Assembly: GCA_964234715.1 (NCBI GenBank)
Contig: OZ174278.1
Source of the DNA: Podarcis melisellensis
Lineage: Eukaryota
Direction: 5' to 3' (one strand)
DNA: 64,000 nt
The translations under genes were made by a program, and so were the position numbers. Position 1 is the first letter of the stretch. Every line of letters starts with the position of its first letter. The notes under the pieces were generated by a model. That model had not been told where the DNA came from and did not search any database. It was given only the letters and a program-made list of their open reading frames with translations. Shown here in pieces: positions 21,015 to 62,980 of the stretch.

Positions 21015-22975
21015 CAGTGGTACCTCAGGTTAAGTACTTAATTCGTTCCGGAGGTCCGTACTTAACCTGAAACTGTTCTTAACCTGAAGCACCACTTTAG
21101 CCTATGGGAGCTCCTGCTGCTGCTGCGCCGCTGTTCTCATCTGTTCTCATCCTGAAGCAAAGTTCTTAATCTGAAGCACTAATTCTGGGTTAGCAGAGTC
21201 TGTAACCTGAAGCATATGTAATCTGCTTTTTGAATAATTTTTATTAAGTTTTCCAAATTAAAACAAATAAAATCCAATTCATAAACTTTTTCCAATATCC
21301 AGGACTTCCCCTCCCCACCCCCTCTTGTGTTCCAAATCTTCCAAAAAAGCAATGATATTCAACAAATTCTTATTCCCAAAATACACTCATCATCAATAAC
21401 TCAATTTATCCAAATTTCCATCCCCTAAGGTCGACCTATTCCCTTCCACGAGTTCCCCCCTTTCAGATATAATACAGATGAAAATAGAATAAAAACAAAC
21501 AATAATTTTACAACCTTTGGATTCCAAATTTCCCTCCCCTCTTTCCCTGTTGCGTTCCCCCTATCCCTCCACTTCTAGTGTCTTCCTGATGAACCCACCT
21601 TTCACTAAACCCACCTAAACCCACATCCCTCTGGTTCTTTACCGGTCTTTTTTTTTTTTTAAATGGCATATATTAAACTTCTGGCATTTTTAAAATTACA
21701 GATGTCCAATCATAGAAGGAGTCTATCAAAGGGGGCCCATTTCTTCTATCCAGATTTTTATATCCAGGAGTATAAACTCCAATTTTATATCCATAAGCTT
21801 GTCAAATCTGGATATCCCAAATGTTCCCACATTCTGTCCAGTTCTTGTTGTTTCCTTGTTCTTGTCAATCACTCTCCTCCTTTTTACTTCCCTGTTCCCT
21901 CACAGAAATGTTCTTTTTCCAAAAGCTTCTAGTGTCTCTACAGAGGCTTGTTATTCAGGAGCAAAACATTACATCATGTTCCTTTCATTTTTCAACAGAT
22001 TAATCCATTGTTTCCAGTAAAGTGTAGGCCTCTGTAGACAAAATAATGTTCCATTTCTGCAGTTTCCCAGGAGATTAAAAGTTCTATCCAACTGTTCAAG
22101 TTTCCCGTCGAAAACACATGCAATGTCCCTCAGCTCCTCTAGGTGGATTACAATAACAAAGTTCCCTTCCAGATCACATCCGCCAGTCCAAATAACTTAT
22201 AAATCCTTATTTGAAACAATTTATCTCCAATTTATAACAAATGTAGCCGGCAAAGTCCTCATAACAAAATCTCAATTTCATTCTTCCGTTTTGACAGCTC
22301 TTTGACAGCTGTCAAAACCTCCGTTGTTCTTCTCCAGGCATTTTCACGAATCGCTCCAGGGATTCCGGGGGGGTTACTTTTTAATACAAATTCCACTTTT
22401 CTCCTCCAGCTCAATCTTATAAATTTCCCTCGCGAAGTTGCTAGTTCGGCAAGATAAGGTTCTTCTCGATCTTAGTTATCCAGTCCTTTGTTTTGGCTCT
22501 TCTACAATTCGGGGGGGGGGCTGACTTCCTTTTTTCCACCTCCCCCGTTCGCTCCAAATTCTAAAAATTTATCCCTCTTTTTAGTCCATATTCCAATTAC
22601 TCACGGGTTCTTCTTTTGGGTCCAAATTTTCAATAGAAGAAGTCAGCGCTCTCCGCCGGATGGCATGCGGCTGCGCTCGGCAGGGATAGCAGAGGACTCA
22701 AAGCACCACGCTCCTCCCCGGCACCCGATCCGTAGCCTTTAAAAAGGCTCCTTCACGAATCGAGAGGGCGCTGACGGTGCCAGCCGAGTCTCCATGTCCA
22801 CGGCCTCCGTGGCCGTGGTTTTTAAGGGTCCCCGCATCGCCGGTGCGGTAGGACCCAGCCCCTGCCGAGCAGGCTCCCTCCGGAGCTCGGAGGGAGCCCG
22901 CCATTCGGCGATGGCGCCGACCCGGAAGTCTGAAGCATATGTAATCTGAAGCGTATGTAACCCGAGGTACCACTG
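21015..22975. mobile_element. Tigger-like MITE (same family as 2300-2495) split by a retroelement
   Basis: TA|CAGTGGTACCTCAGGTTA ... TAACCCGAGGTACCACTG|TA; halves at 21015-21225 and 22930-22975. Confidence 0.85.
21226..22929 (-). mobile_element. 1.7-kb L1-like non-autonomous retroelement retaining both 5' and 3' ends
   Basis: 19-bp TSD ctgaagcatatgtaatctg (21207-21225, 22930-22948); - strand starts ACTTCCGGG...ATGGCG in a CpG-rich 5' region and ends with AATAAA plus an A-rich tail. Confidence 0.75.
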
Positions 22976-25661: not shown

Positions 25662-27043
25662 CCGTATTTTTCGCACCATAGGACGCACCGGACCATAGGG
25701 CGCACCCAGTTTTTTGGGGGGGAAATAAAGGGGAAAAAATTATTTCCCCCCCCCCAGGCGCGGGGCTGGGGCGGGGGAAGCTCGAGCTTCCCCCGACCCC
25801 AGCCCCCAAACAGGCAGCTCTCCGCAAGCAGCGGGAGCGCTCCCGCTGCTTGCGGAGAGGTCCGCGAAGCCTGGACGCGCTGAGCTCAGCGCGCCCAGGC
25901 TTCGGCATGCAGGCACCTCTCCGCAAGCAGCGGGAGCGTTCCCGCTGCTTGCGGAGAGGTCCGCGAAGCCTGGACGCGCTGAGCTCAGCGCGCCCAGGCT
26001 TCGGCATGCAGGCACCTCTCCGCAAGCAGCAGCGGGAGCGTTCCCGCTGCTTGCGGAGAGGTCCGCGAAGCCTGGATGCGCTGAGCTCAGCACGCCCAGG
26101 CTTCGGCACGCAGGCACCTCTCCGCAAGCAGCGGGAGCGTTCCCGCTGCTTGCGGAGAGGTGCGCGAAGCCTGGACGCGCTGAGCTCAGCGCGCCCAGGC
26201 TTCGGCACGCAGGCACCTCTCCGCAAGCAGCAGCGGGAGCGTTCCCGCTGCTTGCGGAGAGGTCCGCGAAGCCTGGACGCGCTGAGCTCAGCGCGCCCAG
26301 GCTTCGGCACGCAGGCACCTCTCCGCAAGCAGCGGGAGCGTTCCCGCTGCTTGCGGAGAGGTCCGCGAAGCCTGGACGCGCTGAGCTCAGCGCGCCCAGG
26401 CTTCGGCACGCAGGCACCTCTCCGCAAGCAGCGGGAGCGTTCCCGCTGCTTGCGGAGAGGTCCGCGAAGCCTGGACGCGCTGAGCTCAGCGCGCCCAGGC
26501 TTCGGCACGCAGGCACCTCTCCGCAAGCAGCGGGAGCGTTCCCGCTGCTTGCGGAGAGGTCCGCGAAGCCTGGACGCGCTGAGCTCAGCGCGCCCAGGCT
26601 TCGGCACGCAGGCACCTCTCCGCAAGCAGCGGGAGCGTTCCCGCTGCTTGCGGAGAGGTCCGCGAAGCCTGGACGCGCTGAGCTCAGCGCGCCCAGGCTT
26701 CGGCATGCAGGCACCTCTCCGCAAGCAGCAGCGGGAGCGTTCCCGCTGCTTGCGGAGAGGTCCGCTGCTTGCGGAGAGGTCCGCGAAGCCTGGACGCGCT
26801 GAGCTCAGCGCGCCCAGGCTTCGGCATGCAGGCAACTCTCCGCAAGCAGTGGGAGCCCAGCGCTGGGCTCCCGCTGCTTGCGGAGAGGTGTGCGAAGCCT
26901 GGAGAGCTGAGGGGTCGGTGCGCACCGACCCCTCTCACTCTCCAGGCTTCAGCGAAAGCCTGCATTCGCACCATAGGACGCACACACATTTCCCCTTCAT
27001 TTTTGGAGGGGAAAAAGTGCGTCCTATGGTGCGAAAAATACGG
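25662..27043. mobile_element. Non-autonomous Tc2-like (Tc1/mariner superfamily) DNA transposon carrying a hairpin tandem array
   Basis: TA|CCGTATTTTTCGCACCATAGGACGCAC ... GTGCGTCCTATGGTGCGAAAAATACGG|TA perfect TIRs with TA TSD. Confidence 0.88.
25818..26890. repeat. ~99-bp tandem repeat, 10 units plus a partial one, each built from two palindromes
   Basis: Unit ctctccgcaagcagcgggagcgttcccgctgcttgcggagag-gtccgc-gaagcctggacgcgctgagctcagcgcgcccaggcttc-ggcacgcaggcac; units start at 25818, 25917, 26016 and so on. Confidence 0.97.
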
Positions 27044-27201: not shown

Positions 27202-27461
27202 CAGTCATACCTTATGTTACGTCCGCTTCATGTTACGTTCTTTCAGGTTACATCCCGCGGTGATCCGGAAGTACCGGAAAGGGTTACTTCCGGGTTTCGC
27301 CACTCGCGCATGTGCAGAAGCGCAAAATGACATCACACGCATGCACAAAAGCGGGGAATCACAACCCGCGCACATGCAGACGCGCCACTGTGGGTTGCGT
27401 TCTTTTCATGTTGCGAACGGGCCTCCGGAACGGATCCCGTTCGCAACCAGCAGTATCACTG
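27202..27461. mobile_element. Tigger-like MITE
   Basis: TA|CAGTCATACCT ... CAGTATCACTG|TA, degenerate TIRs. Confidence 0.7.
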
Positions 27462-27710
27462 TATACTGTATGGTTTCTAACTGCATTTTTATTTTTTGAG
27501 AGAGTTGGACTTGTCCTAAAAAAGTTAATGAACCACTGACAGAGGGCTCTGTCTTCCAGATAAATAGTGACCATCCTTATTTCATACATTGTGATGCATC
27601 AATATATTGTGATGTTGAAAACCAGATATGGCCCGACCCTAGAACCTGGAGGCAGTACTGCAGCAAATTTGCTCAAGAGTACCCATGTATTACTTATATA
27701 TGTTCTAAGG

Positions 27711-27846
27711 CAGGCTTCCTCAACCTCGGCCCTCCAGATGTTTTGAGACTACAATTCCCATCATCCCTGACCACTGGTCCTGCTAGCTAGGGATCATGGG
27801 ATTTATAGGCCAAAAACATCTGGAGGGCCGAAGTTGAGGACGCCTG
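27711..27846. mobile_element. hAT-like foldback MITE; decayed relatives near 24470-24590, 35360-35445, 37495-37620, 47620-47750 and 56035-56140
   Basis: CAGGCTTCCTCAACCTCGGCCCTCCAGATGTTTT ... AAAACATCTGGAGGGCCGAAGTTGAGGACGCCTG long terminal inverted repeat. Confidence 0.7.

Positions 27847-34017: not shown

Positions 34018-34067
<50 letters not shown>

Positions 34068-35034: not shown

Positions 35035-35084
<50 letters not shown>
35035..35084. repeat. (TTA)n microsatellite
   Basis: Direct reading. Confidence 0.97.
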
Positions 35085-45098: not shown

Positions 45099-46035
45099 TT
45101 GCTTTCGTAGATTTTCACGGGTACAGGAATGCAGGTTTTGGTGTCCTCGGGTGTCTTCCCGTGTAAAAGTTGGGGTGTCTAGGCGACGTTTCGACGAGGT
45201 CTCACTCGTCATCTTCAGGCTGGTGCTTTCGGCTTCTTGTTACTGGAACAGAGCAGGATCTCAGTGTTTGAGTTCCTATAAATACTGTTGAGGGGGTGTG
45301 GTGTATAGCCTCCAATGTTCTGGGCAGAGAGGAAGTTCCCAGGCTAGTGTGCCTTTTCTTCTTTTGTTCCTTAATTACTTGAGGGATATCTTGAGTGATT
45401 TCTTGAGTGATATCCTGAGTACCACTTAGGTGGGTCATTAGGTGTGGATTAGTTGCTAAAGTCTTTGTGTCTTGACCTCTTGAACTTTGTGAAGAGTTTT
45501 TCTGAGAAGATGGCTGTACTGCACTTAGTTGTGCTCTGGCTTGGCTTCGTGTATAGGGGCGAGCTGTGGTTTTGTGGCCTGTGTCAGCCAGATCTGTGTA
45601 GGGATTGCAGGGGGGTGCAGCATCCGGAGGTGCCACCATGGTTTGGCTACTGGATGGTGTCTGTAATTTATCTGTGGAGAGGGTCTGGGTTTGGGTCTGA
45701 GACTTTAGCAACTAATCCACACCTAATGACCCACCTAAGTGGTACTCAGGATATCACTCAAGAAATCACTCAAGATATCCCTCAAGTAATTAAGGAACAA
45801 AAGAAGAAAAGGCACACTAGCCTGGGAACTTCCTCTCTGCCCAGAACATTGGAGGCTATACACCACACCCCCTCAACAGTATTTATAGGAACTCAAACAC
45901 TGAGATCCTGCTCTGTTCCAGTAACAAGAAGCCGAAAGCACCAGCCTGAAGATGACGAGTGAGACCTCGTCGAAACGTCGCCTAGACACCCCAACTTTTA
46001 CACGGGAAGACACCCGAGGACACCAAAACCTGCAT
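45099..46035. mobile_element. 5'-truncated Penelope-like retroelement with inverted pseudo-LTR arms (45129-45464 / 45700-46035), inserted in a (TA)n tract
   Basis: 336-bp inverted repeat with 235-bp spacer, (TA)n on both flanks, hammerhead core in each arm; this architecture is typical of Penelope-like elements. Confidence 0.8.
45946..45979 (+). ncRNA. Minimal hammerhead ribozyme-like core (Penelope type); mirror copy on the - strand at 45185-45218
   Basis: CUGAAGA-U-GACGAG(ugagac)CUCGUC-GAAA-C-GUC: CUGANGA box, 6-bp stem II, GAAA box and GUC cleavage triplet. Confidence 0.75.
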
Positions 46036-48998: not shown

Positions 48999-49167
48999 CC
49001 GTATTTTTCGCTCTATAACACACACCCGACCATAACACGCACGTAGTTTTTAGAGGAGGAAAATCTGTAGGCATGCCACCCGTAGGCATTTCCTCCATAA
49101 CACGTACAGACATTTCCCCTTACTTTCTGGGAGGAAAAAAGTGAGTGTTATGGTGCAAAAAATACGG
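48999..49167. mobile_element. Tc2-like MITE (short, array-less relative of 25662-27043)
   Basis: TA|CCGTATTTTTCGC ... GGTGCAAAAAATACGG|TA; shares the gaccata and catttcccct subterminal motifs. Confidence 0.8.

Positions 49168-50070: not shown

Positions 50071-50133
<63 letters not shown>

Positions 50134-52014: not shown

Positions 52015-52058
<44 letters not shown>
52015..52058. repeat. (TC)n(AC)n microsatellite
   Basis: Direct reading. Confidence 0.96.
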
Positions 52059-57713: not shown

Positions 57714-58770
57714 TAACCCCACCACCACCACAGTAGTCCCTATAAAAATGCTTTACACCTATGCTTTTGAAGTTGTAAAGAAAACAATATATTGTATGCA
57801 GCTTTGTTGTAAATACCTGCCCTCACAGCTCTGCATTTCTGACCCACTCTCCTGACCTGCCTTGCAAAATCTTTTGAAGGAGTATTGCTAGGAACGCCAA
57901 AGTCCCAGTGGCATAGACCCATTTTATGAACTTGCAAATTTAGGCTGATTTTTCCAAAAATCAACAACAAATTCTGGTTTGGGCTGCCTGAACTGTCATG
58001 GATTGTTTTCAGCCTAGTTAACTGTTAGGATGTGATTCCCTTCTGTCTTCCTGTGACTGAAAGATGTTACCAGCTGAACTGAATCAGGGCTTTGTCAGTT
58101 TATACTATCAGATAACTTTTTGATAGATATAATGATAATCTGGCTAGCTCAAGTGGAGTCAGGACTCAGGATAAACCGAGTATGCCATGAGAAGTGCTGC
58201 TGTTGCTATTACATTATTCAGCCACAGTTCTATAAAAAGCCAACCTCAAGCTTTGAGGTAAATCTTTAATGAGAACTGGTTCCCATGGCCTTTTACTGTT
58301 TTGAAGCTCCTGGCGTTACACAGCCTAGTTGAAAAGTTATTTTAAAGGTGATGAAATATTATTATATTTGAAACTCTGATTTCTGCATACATCATCTGCT
58401 GCCCATGTGGCTTGGCTGTTACTATGGTTTGTTGGACCTCAATTCATTTCGAGGTCACTGGCTACTTGACTCCTTTCATAGTAAGTAGCCTTGTATTGGG
58501 TTAGGAAACAAAATTAGGGCAATGGCAAAAATTAGGAGGCATCTACACAAAAAACATATAAAGCTCAATGAAGGTATCACAGGAAACTCTCTTTGGACAC
58601 ATCAGTTTTCACTGATTTGAAGAGAAGCAAATATTGCTGATAAAAACATACTTGTGGGTTTGTGTCCAGCTTAATCCTATAGTCAGTCATAGTCACTGCT
58701 CTGTATCGGCCAAGAAACATTTCCCGCTGTTCTTCCACACCTCTCTGTATATTTTTTCATTTTATATATA

Positions 58771-60889
58771 CAGTGGTGCCCCGCTAGACGAATGCCTCGC
58801 AAGACGAAAAACCCGCAAGACGAAAGGGTTTTTCGGTTTTTGCGACGCTTCGCTAGACGATTTTCCCTATGGGCTTGCATCGCAAGACGAAAGCCCATAG
58901 GGAAATCTCGGGGACCTTTTTTTAAATGCTGGCGGTGGGGAGCAAAGCCTTCCCCCCCCTCCGGACTTCAGAAGAGGTCCAGGAAGGCCGGCGGGGGCGA
59001 AAGGCTTTGCTCCCCACCGCCAGCATTTTAAAAGCGGTCCGGGATAGCAGGGAAGCGCTTCCCGCTATCCCGGACGGCTTTTGAAGGCAGGCAGGGGGGG
59101 CAAAGACTTTTGCCCCCCGCCCGCCTTGGGAAGAGGTCCTGGACCTCTTCCCAAGGCGGGCGGGGGGCAAAAGTCTTTGCCCCCCCTGCCTGCCTAACCG
59201 GGGGCTTTTAAATCCCGGGAGAGCGGGAAGGCAGCGCTGTCTTTTCCGCTCTCCCGGAAAGGCAGGCAGGGGGGAGCAAAGACTTTTGCCCCCCGCCCGC
59301 CTTCGGAAGAGGGCCAGGACCTCTTCCCAAGGCGGGCGGGGGGCAAAAGTCTTTGCCCCCCCTGCCTGCCTAACCGGGGGCTTTTAAATCGCCCCGGGAC
59401 TGTCCGGGGCGATTTAAAAGCCCCCGGACGGCTTTTGAAGCCTCCCCCCCCGCCCGGCTTCGGGGCATCATCCCGATGCCGGGCGGTGGGGCAGGAACGC
59501 CTCCCCCAGCCGCCCGGCTTCGGGGCATCGTCCCGATGCCGGGCGGTGGGGCAGGAACGCCTCCCCCAGCCGCCCGGCTTCGGGGCATCGTCCCGATGCC
59601 GGGCGGTGGGGCAGGAACGCCTCCCCCAGCCGCCCGGCTTCGGGGCATCGTCCCGATGCCGGGCGGTGGGGCAGGAAAGCCTCCCCCAGCCGCCCGGCAT
59701 CGGAACGATGTCCCGAAGCCGGGCGGCCGGGCGGGAAAGCCTCCCCCCCCCCCGCCCGGCTTCGGGGCATCGTCCCGATGCCGGGCGGTGGGGCAGGAAC
59801 GCCTCCCCCAGCCGCCCGGCTTCGGGGCATCGTCCCGATGCCGGGCGGTGGGGCAGGAACGCCTCCCCCAGCCGCCCGGCTTCGGGGCGTCGTCCCGATG
59901 CCGGGCGGTGGGGCAGGAACGCCTCCCCCAGCCGCCCGGTTTCGGGGCGTCGTCCCGATGCCGGGCGGTGGGGCAGGAACGCCTCCCCCAGCCGCCCGGC
60001 TTCGGGGCATCTTCCCGATGCCGGGCGGTGGGGCAGGAACGCCTCCCCCAGCCGCCCGGCTTCGGGGCATCGTCCCGATGCCGGGCGGTGGGGCAGGAAA
60101 GCCTCCCCCAGCCGCCCGGCATCGGAACGATGTCCCGAAGCCGGGCGGCCGGGCGGGAAAGCCTCCCCCCCCCGCCCGGCTTCGGGGCATCGTCCCGATG
60201 CCGGGCGGTGGGGCAGGAACGCCTCCCCCAGCCGCCCGGCATCGGGGCATCGTCCCGATGCCGGGCGGTGGGGCAGGAACGCCTCCCCCAGCCGCCCGGC
60301 TTCGGGGCATCGTCCCGATGCCGGGCGGTGGGGCAGGAAAGCCTCCCCCAGCCGCCCGGCATCGGAACGATGTCCCGAAGCCGGGCGGCCGGGCGGGAAA
60401 GCCTCCCCCCCCCGCCCGGCTTCGGGGCATCGTCCCGATGCCGGGCGGTGGGGCAGGAAAGCCTCCCCCAGCCGCCCGGCATCGGGGCATCGTCCCGATG
60501 CCGGGCGGTGGGGCAGGAACGCCTCCCCCAGCCGCCCGGCATCGGGGCATCGTCCCGATGCCGGGCGGTGGGGCAGGAAAGCCTCCCCCAGCCGCCCGGC
60601 ATCGGAACGATGTCCCGAAGCCGGGCGGCCGGGCGGGAAAGCCTTTGTCCCCCCTGCCTGCCTTCCCAGGGGCTTTTAAATCGCCCCGGACAGCGGAGAA
60701 GTCCTCCGCTGTCCCGGGCGATTTTAAAATGCCGCCCGCCAGAAGAGGTCGGGGGAAGGCTTTTTCCATAGGAACGCATTAATTGATTTTCAATGCATTC
60801 CTATGGAAAACCGTGCATCGCAAGACGAAAAACTCGCAAGACGAAGAGACTTGCGGAACGAATTAATTTCGTCTTGCGAGGCACCACTG
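58771..60889. mobile_element. Non-autonomous Tigger/pogo-like DNA transposon with a palindrome-rich interior and a 60-bp array, in the intron between coding exons 8 and 9
   Basis: TA|CAGTGGTGCCCCGCTAGACGAAT ... ATTTCGTCTTGCGAGGCACCACTG|TA TIRs, TA TSD, repeated subterminal CGCAAGACGA motifs. Confidence 0.88.
59451..60644. repeat. 60-bp GC-rich minisatellite, 20 units, with higher-order structure
   Basis: Unit cgcccggcttcggggcatcgtcccgatgccgggcggtggggcaggaacgcctcccccagc aligns row by row in the 60-nt display. Confidence 0.97.
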
Positions 60890-62980
60890 TATCTCCCTAA
60901 GTTGATTGGTAATAATTTTTAGCTTGTTCACTGTTGTTATCTGAGCCTTATTTGGACGTTCAGGTTCCTCACATGATTTGAAATGTGTGAGGGAGAGGAG
61001 GGAATACACTGTCTGTCCCCGCCCCTGAATCATATCCCCTGGCTCTCCATGTGTCCCCCATTTGATAAACTAAATTGATCCTAAATTGCATGTGGAACTT
61101 CAATAAGAACAGCAGGCACCCTGCTGCAGATGTTCTCCTTCCAACCCAAGGAGGATGGTGGGTCAGGATGGACACAGGTGTCACTGGGAACATTGAGCAT
61201 TACTCTGCTCTTCTTCTTATTGTGTATGGAAGAGAAGTCCTGAATAGGGCACTTTCCCATGAGTTTTGGACAAGTATCTTTGAAATATTTCTTTTTAAGA
61301 GTTAGGAAGGGCTGTGTATCTGTGAACATGGCAGAGAAGCAAACCTCCTGGCAATGGGTTGGGAAAAGAGAAGAGTGGCACAGTCTGGGAATAAGGTTTT
61401 TGGAGTGGCCCATGGCTCTTCAAGCCCCAAACCTGCTTATGTTTCAGCAGCAGTTTTTAAAGTAGATGACTGCATCATGGTGCTGGCTTGTTTCTCCATC
61501 CATCCTCCTCTTCTTTCTAGTCAAATGTTATGCCTGTGTATGAAATCCAGCAGTATTTGGGCATATCTAGTGTGCAGGGTGGAAAGGTACAGACACATTT
61601 CCTAATTATGCATAGCAGAACATTTAGGGGTGAGTGGGAAGTCGGGCTTAGTCCGGTGGGCTTTGTAGAAAAAGGAAGCTTTGGATACTAGTAATGATCA
61701 GTGGTCCTAATTCTTCAGTCGTGAAGGGTTATGCATTGACAATATACTGACATTTGCACATTTTGATTCCCAGTAACACAGATGTATTGAAAGCATTTCT
61801 CAAATCTTACTCTGCATGTGACATTTCAAAAAGGCTTAAATGAGTTCATTGGCATCACAAGCCAAAGAGGAATGAGAAGAAACAGGATTTGCAGAGGAGG
61901 GAAATGACTCAGGGAGGGTTGCTGAGTTTGATGGACCCGCATGAGTGAGAAGTGATCTCTTCCAGTGCTTGACACAGAGCCAGTCACTCTCGTTTTCACC
62001 CCTCCAAAGAATGTGTCACTTACAATAGCAAACTCGGAATTGATTTAGTTTCCATAGGCAGAGTGCCATCAGATGGCTAGGTTTTAGGCAGGCCTGTGTG
62101 GAGCTTGTCTGAGGCCCAGGGTGCGGGTCTTCTTAGAATAAAGTTATAAACTGAAACCAAAAAGCAGTCAGTTCCGGGCAGGGTTTAGCTCCCTTCCCCC
62201 AGCCCTTTGGCCAGCTTATTCCTCCAAGTCCTGGGGCAAGTGTATCTGGCTGCCTGCCCCCTTGCACAGGCCTGGTTTCAGGGTCCCTCCAATTCTCTTT
62301 CCTTTCCCCTTTAAAAAGGTGAAACCTCTCCTCCTGCCATTTTCAGAATAGCAAAATATGCTCACATGGCTGCTATAGGTACCTCTGCATGGCAAGTTAG
62401 GTTGTTGGCCTGGCCTGTGTTCCAGGTCGCATTTGATGGCATGCAAGTAATGTCTAGTTCTACCCATTGCTGTGCTCTGTAATGATGCTGAGCTGTGGCT
62501 ATGGTGCACATGAAAATATTGTGCTGTTGCAATGCTTCAATTTTAGCACATGTGCCACAGAAGTGAGGCCAATCCAGCTGGAAAACCAAACGGAATGCTT
62601 TCTGATGATATAATAATCACACAAGCATCAACACTGCATGTTTCCTGTTCCTAGGATCAAACTTAAAGGCATTTGTAGAATTAGGGTTTTGCGCTTCTTC
62701 CCAAATGTGGGGAAACCTGTGTGGTTAGCCTCCATGAAGTCACACAAGAGATGGCACAACGCACCAAATGCGTTAGAATGAACCTGTAATTTTGTCTTGT
62801 TTAAGGCAAGTATAAGCATTGGCTGTGGTCTTTCGTGCAGATAGTATATTGTTCTGTATGACTGTCAGGTGTAACAGTGCCACAACATCTTTTTTAAAAA
62901 AACAAACAAAGGAAACCAGCCCAAACTTGACTAATGTCTCAAAATGGCCCTGATGTGCTTGAGGAAGGGGCAAGTAATAG

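Follow-up and report, generated by a model that had tools for sequence, protein, structure and literature searches.

A stretch of 64,000 nt from contig OZ174278.1 of Podarcis melisellensis (assembly GCA_964234715.1), called the window here and supplying all position numbers, carries at 58771–60889 an element of 2,119 bp that is flanked by TA on both sides and bounded by 22-bp terminal inverted repeats (TIRs). The left TIR, CAGTGGTGCCCCGCTAGACGAA, lies at 58771–58792 on the plus strand and the right TIR at 60868–60889 on the minus strand, and the 64 kb contain no further match to the consensus CAGTGGTGCCyCGCwAGACGAA, for which the expected number is 0. The two TA dinucleotides, read from the sequence at 58769–58770 and 60890–60891, form a putative target-site duplication; they are consistent with one, but the context is AT-rich (tatatata) and they are hence no proof. 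Between the ends lies a chain of GC-rich palindromes that includes a tandem array of about 20 hairpin-bearing units.

The ends have an ordered structure that can be observed directly. Tandem-repeat finding (period 16, 3 copies) places three 16-bp terminal motifs, TGCCyCGCwAGACGAA, at 58777–58824 on the plus strand, and the right end has one copy fewer; these are probably transposase-binding repeats. The motif CGCAAGACGAA occurs seven times in the window, where 0.27 matches are expected, and every occurrence is within about 120 bp of one end of the element or the other, in keeping with the repeated end motifs of the initial annotation. Further in, sequence and folding reveal a left subterminal palindrome at 58860–58906 (ccctatgggc...gcccataggg), which has a CGCAAGACGAA motif in its loop, and a right one at 60762–60810 (ttccataggaa...ttcctatggaa). 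Aligned to one another, the two ends remain similar over about 40 bp only.

Judged from this anatomy, the element is a non-autonomous cut-and-paste transposon of Tc1/mariner superfamily design. Its open reading frames (ORFs) contain no Pfam domain, the single sub-threshold match, to SPRY, having no accepted stretch, and the long ORFs are translated repeats. Rfam returned no match at the gathering score, and its 88 sub-threshold matches within the element are of a generic hairpin type and fall on both strands. The end architecture, CAGT..CCTCG followed by short direct repeats, is one that we take to resemble known pogo/Tigger ends, and the label 'Tigger-type' is plausible on the shape of the TIR and on the presence of related elements in the window. 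The further label of MITE (miniature inverted-repeat transposable element) holds in part, as the element is non-coding, has TIRs and is flanked by TA. It fails on size, for MITEs are usually under about 600–800 bp and this element, at 2,119 bp, still measures about 0.9 kb when the array is subtracted. 'Non-autonomous element with a shell like that of a MITE' is the more fitting description. In what follows the CAGTGGTGCC shell denotes the family of the studied element and the CCGTATTTTTCGC shell that of a second element, at 25662–27043.

In composition the element stands apart from its surroundings. The ratio of observed to expected CpG is 0.88 over the whole 2.1 kb and exceeds 1.4 in the ends, compared with 0.17–0.31 in the flanks, and the GC content of the element is 0.70, so that by the sequence definition (GC above 50%, ratio above 0.6, length above 200 bp) it is a CpG island. 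As its CpGs are undecayed, the copy must be young, unmethylated, or both, and youth is also argued from the presence within it of a perfect palindrome, H3, described below.

Hairpins were defined by a stem of at least 10 with no more than one mismatch and a loop of no more than 14. Under this definition they cover 63% of the interior of 58771–60889 and 81% of that of 25662–27043, but only 2.5% of the remainder of the window. Dinucleotide shuffles of the studied interior reach a cover of 6.8% (maximum 13%), and shuffles of both interiors give 5–7% (maximum 14%). When folded as single-stranded DNA, the region between the ends forms a chain of local hairpins; the z score is –31.8 in the left palindromes and –11.9 in the array. 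Thus the claim that the interior consists almost wholly of GC-rich hairpins is borne out. At the 1-kb scale the only kilobases of the window above 65% GC lie inside these two elements, as do its only tandem arrays with a period greater than 3; a comparison of palindrome density and periodicity within the window therefore finds hairpin cover and long-period arrays concentrated in two TIR elements.

The chain begins with a palindrome of about 105 nt, H1 (58924–59028), which corresponds to an inverted-repeat pair at 58912–59040 with 58-nt arms that are 88% complementary, and which is also recovered by folding. It is followed by H2 (59029–59083; sequence and folding), whose core, ccgggatagc...gctatcccgg, occupies 59039–59073 and which ends in the linker GGACGGCTTTTGAAG. 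Next comes H3 (59085–59195), a palindrome of 111 nt found by inverted-repeat search and folding, with 55-nt arms that are 100% complementary, each of which has a small hairpin nested inside it. After H4 (59215–59257, from folding) there is a second copy of H3, termed H3' (59261–59371), identified by inverted-repeat search and by alignment to the first. The right arms of H3 and H3' and the linkers behind them are identical over about 75 bp, and all four of the differences between the two copies fall in the left arm of H3'. The palindrome H5 (59376–59425; gggggcttttaaatcgccccgg...), seen in both sequence and folding, then leads to a second copy of the GGACGGCTTTTGAAG linker at 59428 and so to the array. 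Beyond the array, alignment detects a third right arm of H3 type, represented by its tail (60645–60668), which is continuous with the last array unit, and this is succeeded by H5'' (60669–60730; folding and alignment). H5'' has the outer stem of H5 and differs from it by a symmetric 17-bp palindromic insert at the centre of the hairpin. Every feature that the initial annotation had described here, whether TIR, motif, palindrome or array, was recovered where it had been placed or a few bases away, including the palindrome of about 110 bp present twice, the ccgggatagc palindrome and the further palindromes towards the right terminus (60669–60730 and 60762–60810).

The array, which the initial annotation had put at 20 units, spans 59440–60644 and consists of 20.1 copies of a 60-bp unit with 91% matches, as determined by tandem-repeat finding and folding. 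Each unit is made up of a 37-nt hairpin and a 23-nt mini-hairpin formed by a G-run and a C-run. The 37-nt hairpin reads CCGCCCGGC-t-TCGGG, a 7-nt loop, and CCCGA-t-GCCGGGCGG. Three observations connect this unit to the larger palindrome. The linker GGACGGCTTTTGAAG sits before both H3 (59068) and the array (59428). At the other side the last unit continues uninterrupted into an H3 right-arm tail, behind which the same linker and an H5-type hairpin follow as they do behind H3'. Finally, the unit aligns to the core of H3, that is the central palindrome together with one nested arm hairpin, with a score of 47, where the maximum among 500 shuffles was 43, a point that is weak if taken alone. The shared linker, the continuous right boundary and the alignment to the H3 core together imply that the array occupies the place of a third H3 body. 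The most fitting reading of the array is thus that part of the element's own H3 was amplified in tandem, rather than that foreign DNA was captured.

The units are not all alike. Units 5, 12, 16 and 20, here called B, carry the hairpin in a flipped form; by inspection, the B hairpin agrees at 35 of 37 positions with the common, or A, hairpin when the latter is reverse-complemented, but at only 30 of 37 with A as it stands. The four B units do not differ among themselves, and the same A variant stands before each of them. The homology among the modules is directly apparent, and so is a higher-order repeat: the last nine units form a 240-bp repeat, with an identity over 60112–60651 of 98% at a shift of 240 bp as against 88% at a shift of 60 bp. 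The identity of the B units and the 240-bp repeat indicate that the flip arose once and that the array was subsequently enlarged by duplication of multi-unit blocks. Growth in blocks of this kind is ordinary minisatellite and satellite dynamics.

A second copy of this type of element, with a different mixture of modules, was observed in another lizard. Protein searching identified one true relative, a predicted ARHGAP20 of Podarcis muralis (UniRef A0A670HXA1), in which the C-terminal ~240 residues are translated transposon. Residues 699–719 correspond to the left end of the studied element, taking in the doubled 16-bp motif and extending as far as the TIR tip (..FVLRGTTV), with 90% identity over 21 residues, and residues 676–716 correspond to the left subterminal palindrome (56% identity). 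An H3 arm with the GGACGGCTTTTGAAG linker is represented by residues 480–491 (83% identity). Residues 531–640 contain about five 20-residue units, equivalent to 60 bp, of the array type (49–68% identity), in which the hairpin loop is flipped relative to the spacer when compared with the A units of 58771–60889. Residues 493–530, moreover, represent one full 99-bp double-hairpin unit of the other element, where such units occupy 25811–26765 (76% over 38 residues, E = 2e-16), and this unit is free of any trace of the 25662–27043 TIR. Hence the position after the GGACGGCTTTTGAAG linker is taken by H2 in 58771–60889 and by the 99-bp-type unit in the P. muralis model. Both types of unit lie within one reading frame, and the model ends exactly at the tip of the TIR. 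The number of 60-bp-type units is 20 in the studied element and about 5 in the P. muralis gene model, where splicing could join pieces.

Residues ~480–720 of A0A670HXA1 are unlikely to be genuine protein and probably stem from the exonisation of an element or from an artefact of annotation. An interpretation of the model as a right-to-left read-through of a ~0.75-kb P. muralis copy was dropped, since the peptide NAFLWETVH matches the opposite strand of the right end. A protein word search with the 79-residue ORF of the shell gave no matches, and one with the C-terminus of A0A670HXA1 gave A0A670HXA1 only. The exhaustive protein search with the 469-residue ORF of the array gave 29 matches, of which the other 28 were rejected as unrelated proteins with 20-residue periodic repeats and 19–40% identity. 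The TIR pattern found nothing in a scan of viral contigs and a single match in a metagenome scan, which is attributed to chance as it lies within a GC-rich bacterial coding region. The pattern of the array hairpin found nothing in scans of microbial genome contigs and viral contigs.

As the initial annotation had held, the element at 25662–27043 shares the design of the studied element, namely a short TA-flanked TIR shell, a GC-rich hairpin interior and a tandem hairpin array, and has no evident similarity to it in DNA sequence, the longest shared match being 12 bp (E = 0.14). Among the six TA-flanked TIR elements of the window, these two carry arrays and the other four are without a hairpin-rich GC interior. 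One of the four, at 48999–49167, is a 169-bp TA-flanked MITE whose left 64 bp and right 82 bp are 78% and 79% identical to the ends of 25662–27043; it lacks hairpin cargo, has decayed CpGs and represents an older, cargo-less shell of the 25662–27043 family. The array-free MITEs with ends resembling those of 58771–60889 are located at 2299–2497, 21015–22975 and 27202–27462. Those at 2299–2497 and 21015–22975 are TA-flanked and Tigger-like, with the TIR CAGTGGTACCTCnGGTTAAGnAC..TTAATTCGTTCCGGAGGTCC and no array. CAGTGGTrCCTC and TTAATTCGTTCCG occur in both and also in the right end of 58771–60889, which indicates that the TIR groups are related. The right part of 21015–22975 is GC-rich with a few short hairpins, the overall hairpin cover being 6%; it was considered as a relative of either cargo and rejected, as its scores do not exceed those of shuffles. 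The third, at 27202–27462, is a 261-bp TA-flanked MITE (CAGTCATACCTTATGTTACG...) with repeated ATGTTACG motifs that adjoins 25662–27043.

The window also contains inverted structures of other kinds. A compact palindromic element at 27711–27846 has 58-nt arms that are 86% complementary and separated by 20 nt, and 45129–46035 holds an inverted repeat of 336 nt whose arms, 235 nt apart, are 100% complementary. Two pairs of inverted microsatellites were recorded, one at 50075–50118 and 52015–52058, where (GT)n(GA)n and (TC)n(AC)n stand opposite each other 1.9 kb apart and are 100% complementary over 44 nt, and the other at 34018–34067 and 35035–35084, where (ATA)n is opposite (TTA)n at a distance of about 1 kb. 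Each pair might mark the termini of an inverted duplication or of a microsatellite-tailed element.

Several features of the palindromes resemble the products of quasipalindrome mutagenesis, in which arms become perfected, loops inverted and repeats symmetrically enlarged. The signatures seen here are the perfect palindrome with 55-nt arms, the differences between H3 and H3' confined to one arm, the symmetric 17-bp addition in H5'' and the flipped hairpin loop of the B unit. Template switching between the arms of an inverted repeat homogenises the arms, inverts spacers and enlarges repeats, according to three reports (PMC8604942, PMC8794818, PMC13100816). From these end products we infer that template switching generated the palindromes of 58771–60889. 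The process is described as a point-like one, affecting yeast genes, RNA genes and promoters, and is not known to have built transposon interiors out of hairpins on the scale of kilobases. The earlier proposal of fold-back or template-switch synthesis is accordingly upheld in part, for the palindromes carry its signatures whilst the array is mostly explained by transposition and unequal exchange.

The reading that is preferred, with a probability of roughly 0.7, combines these strands: the locus would hold a young, non-autonomous, Tigger-like copy with an array derived from its own sequence, palindromes shaped by template switching, and modules drawn from a shared pool. The element would be one copy of a multi-copy family of the Tc1/mariner superfamily in a lizard of the lacertid type, and its shell, comprising the 22-bp TIR, the 16-bp CGCAAGACGAA-bearing repeats and the subterminal palindrome, would be recognised by a transposase supplied in trans. 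The interior is envisaged as a fast-evolving chain of GC- and CpG-rich palindromic modules, borne by the family and parted by TTTTAAA-type linkers. The core of H3, consisting of the central hairpin and one small arm hairpin, would have been tandemly amplified to give the 60-bp array, which may then have been enlarged through unequal exchange or slippage of multi-unit blocks, whilst a single inversion of a hairpin loop would have produced the B unit, to be propagated by block duplication. Intra-strand or inter-arm template switching is likely to have made, perfected, flipped and lengthened the palindromes. Transposition would disperse the arrays, with separate copies holding separate mixtures of modules, and such dispersal, together with unequal exchange, accounts for the location of arrays within shells. 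As the modules appear to be common to at least one other TIR family, the two arrays of the window may come from a common pool and not from independent convergence.

A number of points weigh against this reading. There is no autonomous partner or transposase within the 64-kb window, and for that reason the pogo/Tigger assignment, and with it the deduced family of the transposase, rests on the shape of the TIR and on its resemblance to known Tigger ends. Outside the right boundary the array unit resembles the H3 core only weakly, and the copy number of the array could be open to assembly effects. The sole additional copy is a predicted protein, in which splicing could have united pieces that are separate in the DNA. 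Finally, residues 471–479 of that protein, NAFLWETVH, fit the plus strand of the right end and are not collinear with the remainder.

The initial annotation had favoured a different account, in which two unrelated TA-targeting families gained their arrays independently through a process general to the lineage, such as template-switch or fold-back synthesis during the repair of gaps left by excision. There is some basis for this in the window, where the two cargos share no DNA similarity, where both long-period arrays and both GC-rich kilobases lie inside TIR elements, and where the shell of the other family also occurs in a cargo-less version at 48999–49167. The palindromes composed of palindromes, the one-arm differences and the flipped loop do resemble template switching; break repair increases template-switch and quasipalindrome mutation, as reported in one preprint (bioRxiv 10.1101/2023.08.09.552703), and one proposal has MITE families arising through template switching in abortive gap repair (PMC3814204). 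Nothing in the sequence, however, singles out post-excision repair, and the same features fit template switching in ordinary replication equally well. The idea of a process that fills TIR elements generally loses ground as only two of the six such elements in the window carry arrays and two of the four that lack a hairpin-rich GC interior belong to related TIR groups. Most directly, A0A670HXA1 holds both types of cargo in one shell, and so the arrays are not independent inventions but point to exchange or descent. The 60-bp unit type in another copy also argues that the array was inherited with the family and not built at each locus. On the question of whether the array moved as cargo or grew in situ the outcome is accordingly divided, in that it derives from the element's own H3 and is not foreign, whilst its unit type is present in the P. 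muralis copy too. Independent convergence is thus unlikely, and a shared or exchanged pool of modules appears to fit the sequences better; the route by which modules passed between shells is something we infer from their distribution.

If modules do pass between shells, they might themselves be the mobile entities, small units that insert into each other or take each other's place at linkers of the TTTTAAA or GGCTTTTGAAG type, in the way of the double-hairpin elements or GC clusters known from fungal mitochondria, and the TIR shells would be no more than frequent landing sites and vehicles for them. The 99-bp-type unit of P. muralis lies without its TIR right behind a conserved linker, where 58771–60889 has H2; a discrete palindromic insert separates H5'' from H5; and recurring linkers bound the modules. 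Yet a BLAST comparison of both interiors against the remaining 60 kb of the window recovered shell ends only and no solo module, hairpin cover outside the elements is low, as given above, and neither a target duplication nor defined termini are seen for any module. Recombination between elements, or template switching, accounts for the same data, which makes autonomous mobility of the modules very unlikely. A wider proposal, which is speculative and somewhat unlikely, is that hairpin modules act as cassettes exchanged between unrelated TIR shells at conserved linkers, either by template switching in repair or replication or as small mobile palindromes, in which case lizard MITEs would be both nurseries and vehicles that seed CpG-island-like palindromic minisatellites. 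That the palindromes and the array could be products of assembly, arising from fold-back chimeric long reads or a mis-assembled shorter repeat, has to be considered, since assembly is notoriously difficult where palindromes are long and perfect or arrays rich in GC. This is extremely improbable in view of the coherent ends, TA flanks and module order, the structured variants and clean 240-bp higher-order repeat of the array, and the occurrence of the shell and unit type in the independent assembly and annotation of another lizard, P. muralis.

Amongst described systems, the nearest to the family-borne module chain preferred here are the MITEs that contain tandem repeats, which include DTC84 of Donax trunculus, pearl/CvA of oysters, Xmix/Xstir of Xenopus, miDNA4 and several insect elements (PMC3879986; PMC9659126). 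As with these, the studied element is non-coding and has short inverted ends, a short putative target duplication and a central array. In the known elements the number of core repeats varies among copies, the flanks have been viewed as a 'cassette' for the repeats, and a role as a possible seed of satellite DNA has been suggested (PMC3879986; PMC9659126); in DTC84 each core repeat contains a palindrome that is proposed to be a hotspot for change in array length (PMC3879986). Unlike them, the whole interior of 58771–60889, beyond the array, is composed of long GC- and CpG-rich palindromes, and its repeat unit is a double hairpin taken from a larger palindrome of its own, with a flipped unit type present. 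It has 20 units in 2.1 kb where the described elements usually have no more than six, and whilst theirs is an AA target duplication, it has a putative TA duplication, a Tigger-like TIR and a lizard host.

The shell can be compared with the TcMar-N families of Anolis that have Tigger3/4-like ends (PMC3014272). Both have TA flanks, a TIR that starts CAGT..CCTCG, no coding sequence and direct repeats behind the TIR, which in the Anolis families are of a 9–11-bp motif. The survey of Anolis DNA transposons makes no mention of hairpins, palindromes or internal tandem arrays in its TcMar-N families (PMC3014272). Foldback elements provide a further comparison. Those such as Tetris of Drosophila virilis have long TIRs built of tandem subrepeats, and their halves pair (PMC4079207; PMC9659126). 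Like them, 58771–60889 carries DNA transposon repeats with extensive secondary structure that are able to seed tandem arrays; unlike them, it has a TIR of 22 bp, its halves are not complementary and all of its palindromes are local or within the array. A foldback identity was rejected on the grounds that the ends align over about 40 bp only and that the long inverted repeats are all local or in the array. The suggestion that no described system matches the element therefore needs qualifying, since tandem-repeat-containing MITEs have been described, although literature searches found no report of hairpin-array MITEs in lizards. Hence 58771–60889 is an unusual variant of the known repeat-carrying miniature transposons and not a new kind of system.

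For annotation, arrays of this kind are the interiors of transposons and not genes, microRNA clusters or free-standing satellites, and one element appears to be the source of ~240 residues in the predicted ARHGAP20 of P. muralis. The elements offer a natural series in which to follow the birth of palindromes, their perfection, flipping and tandem conversion, as well as the seeding of satellite DNA by transposons. If the picture of the family is true, kilobase-scale, CpG-island-like and cruciform-prone arrays would have been spread into introns, where they would be potential fragile sites, replication barriers, new promoters and exonised sequence.

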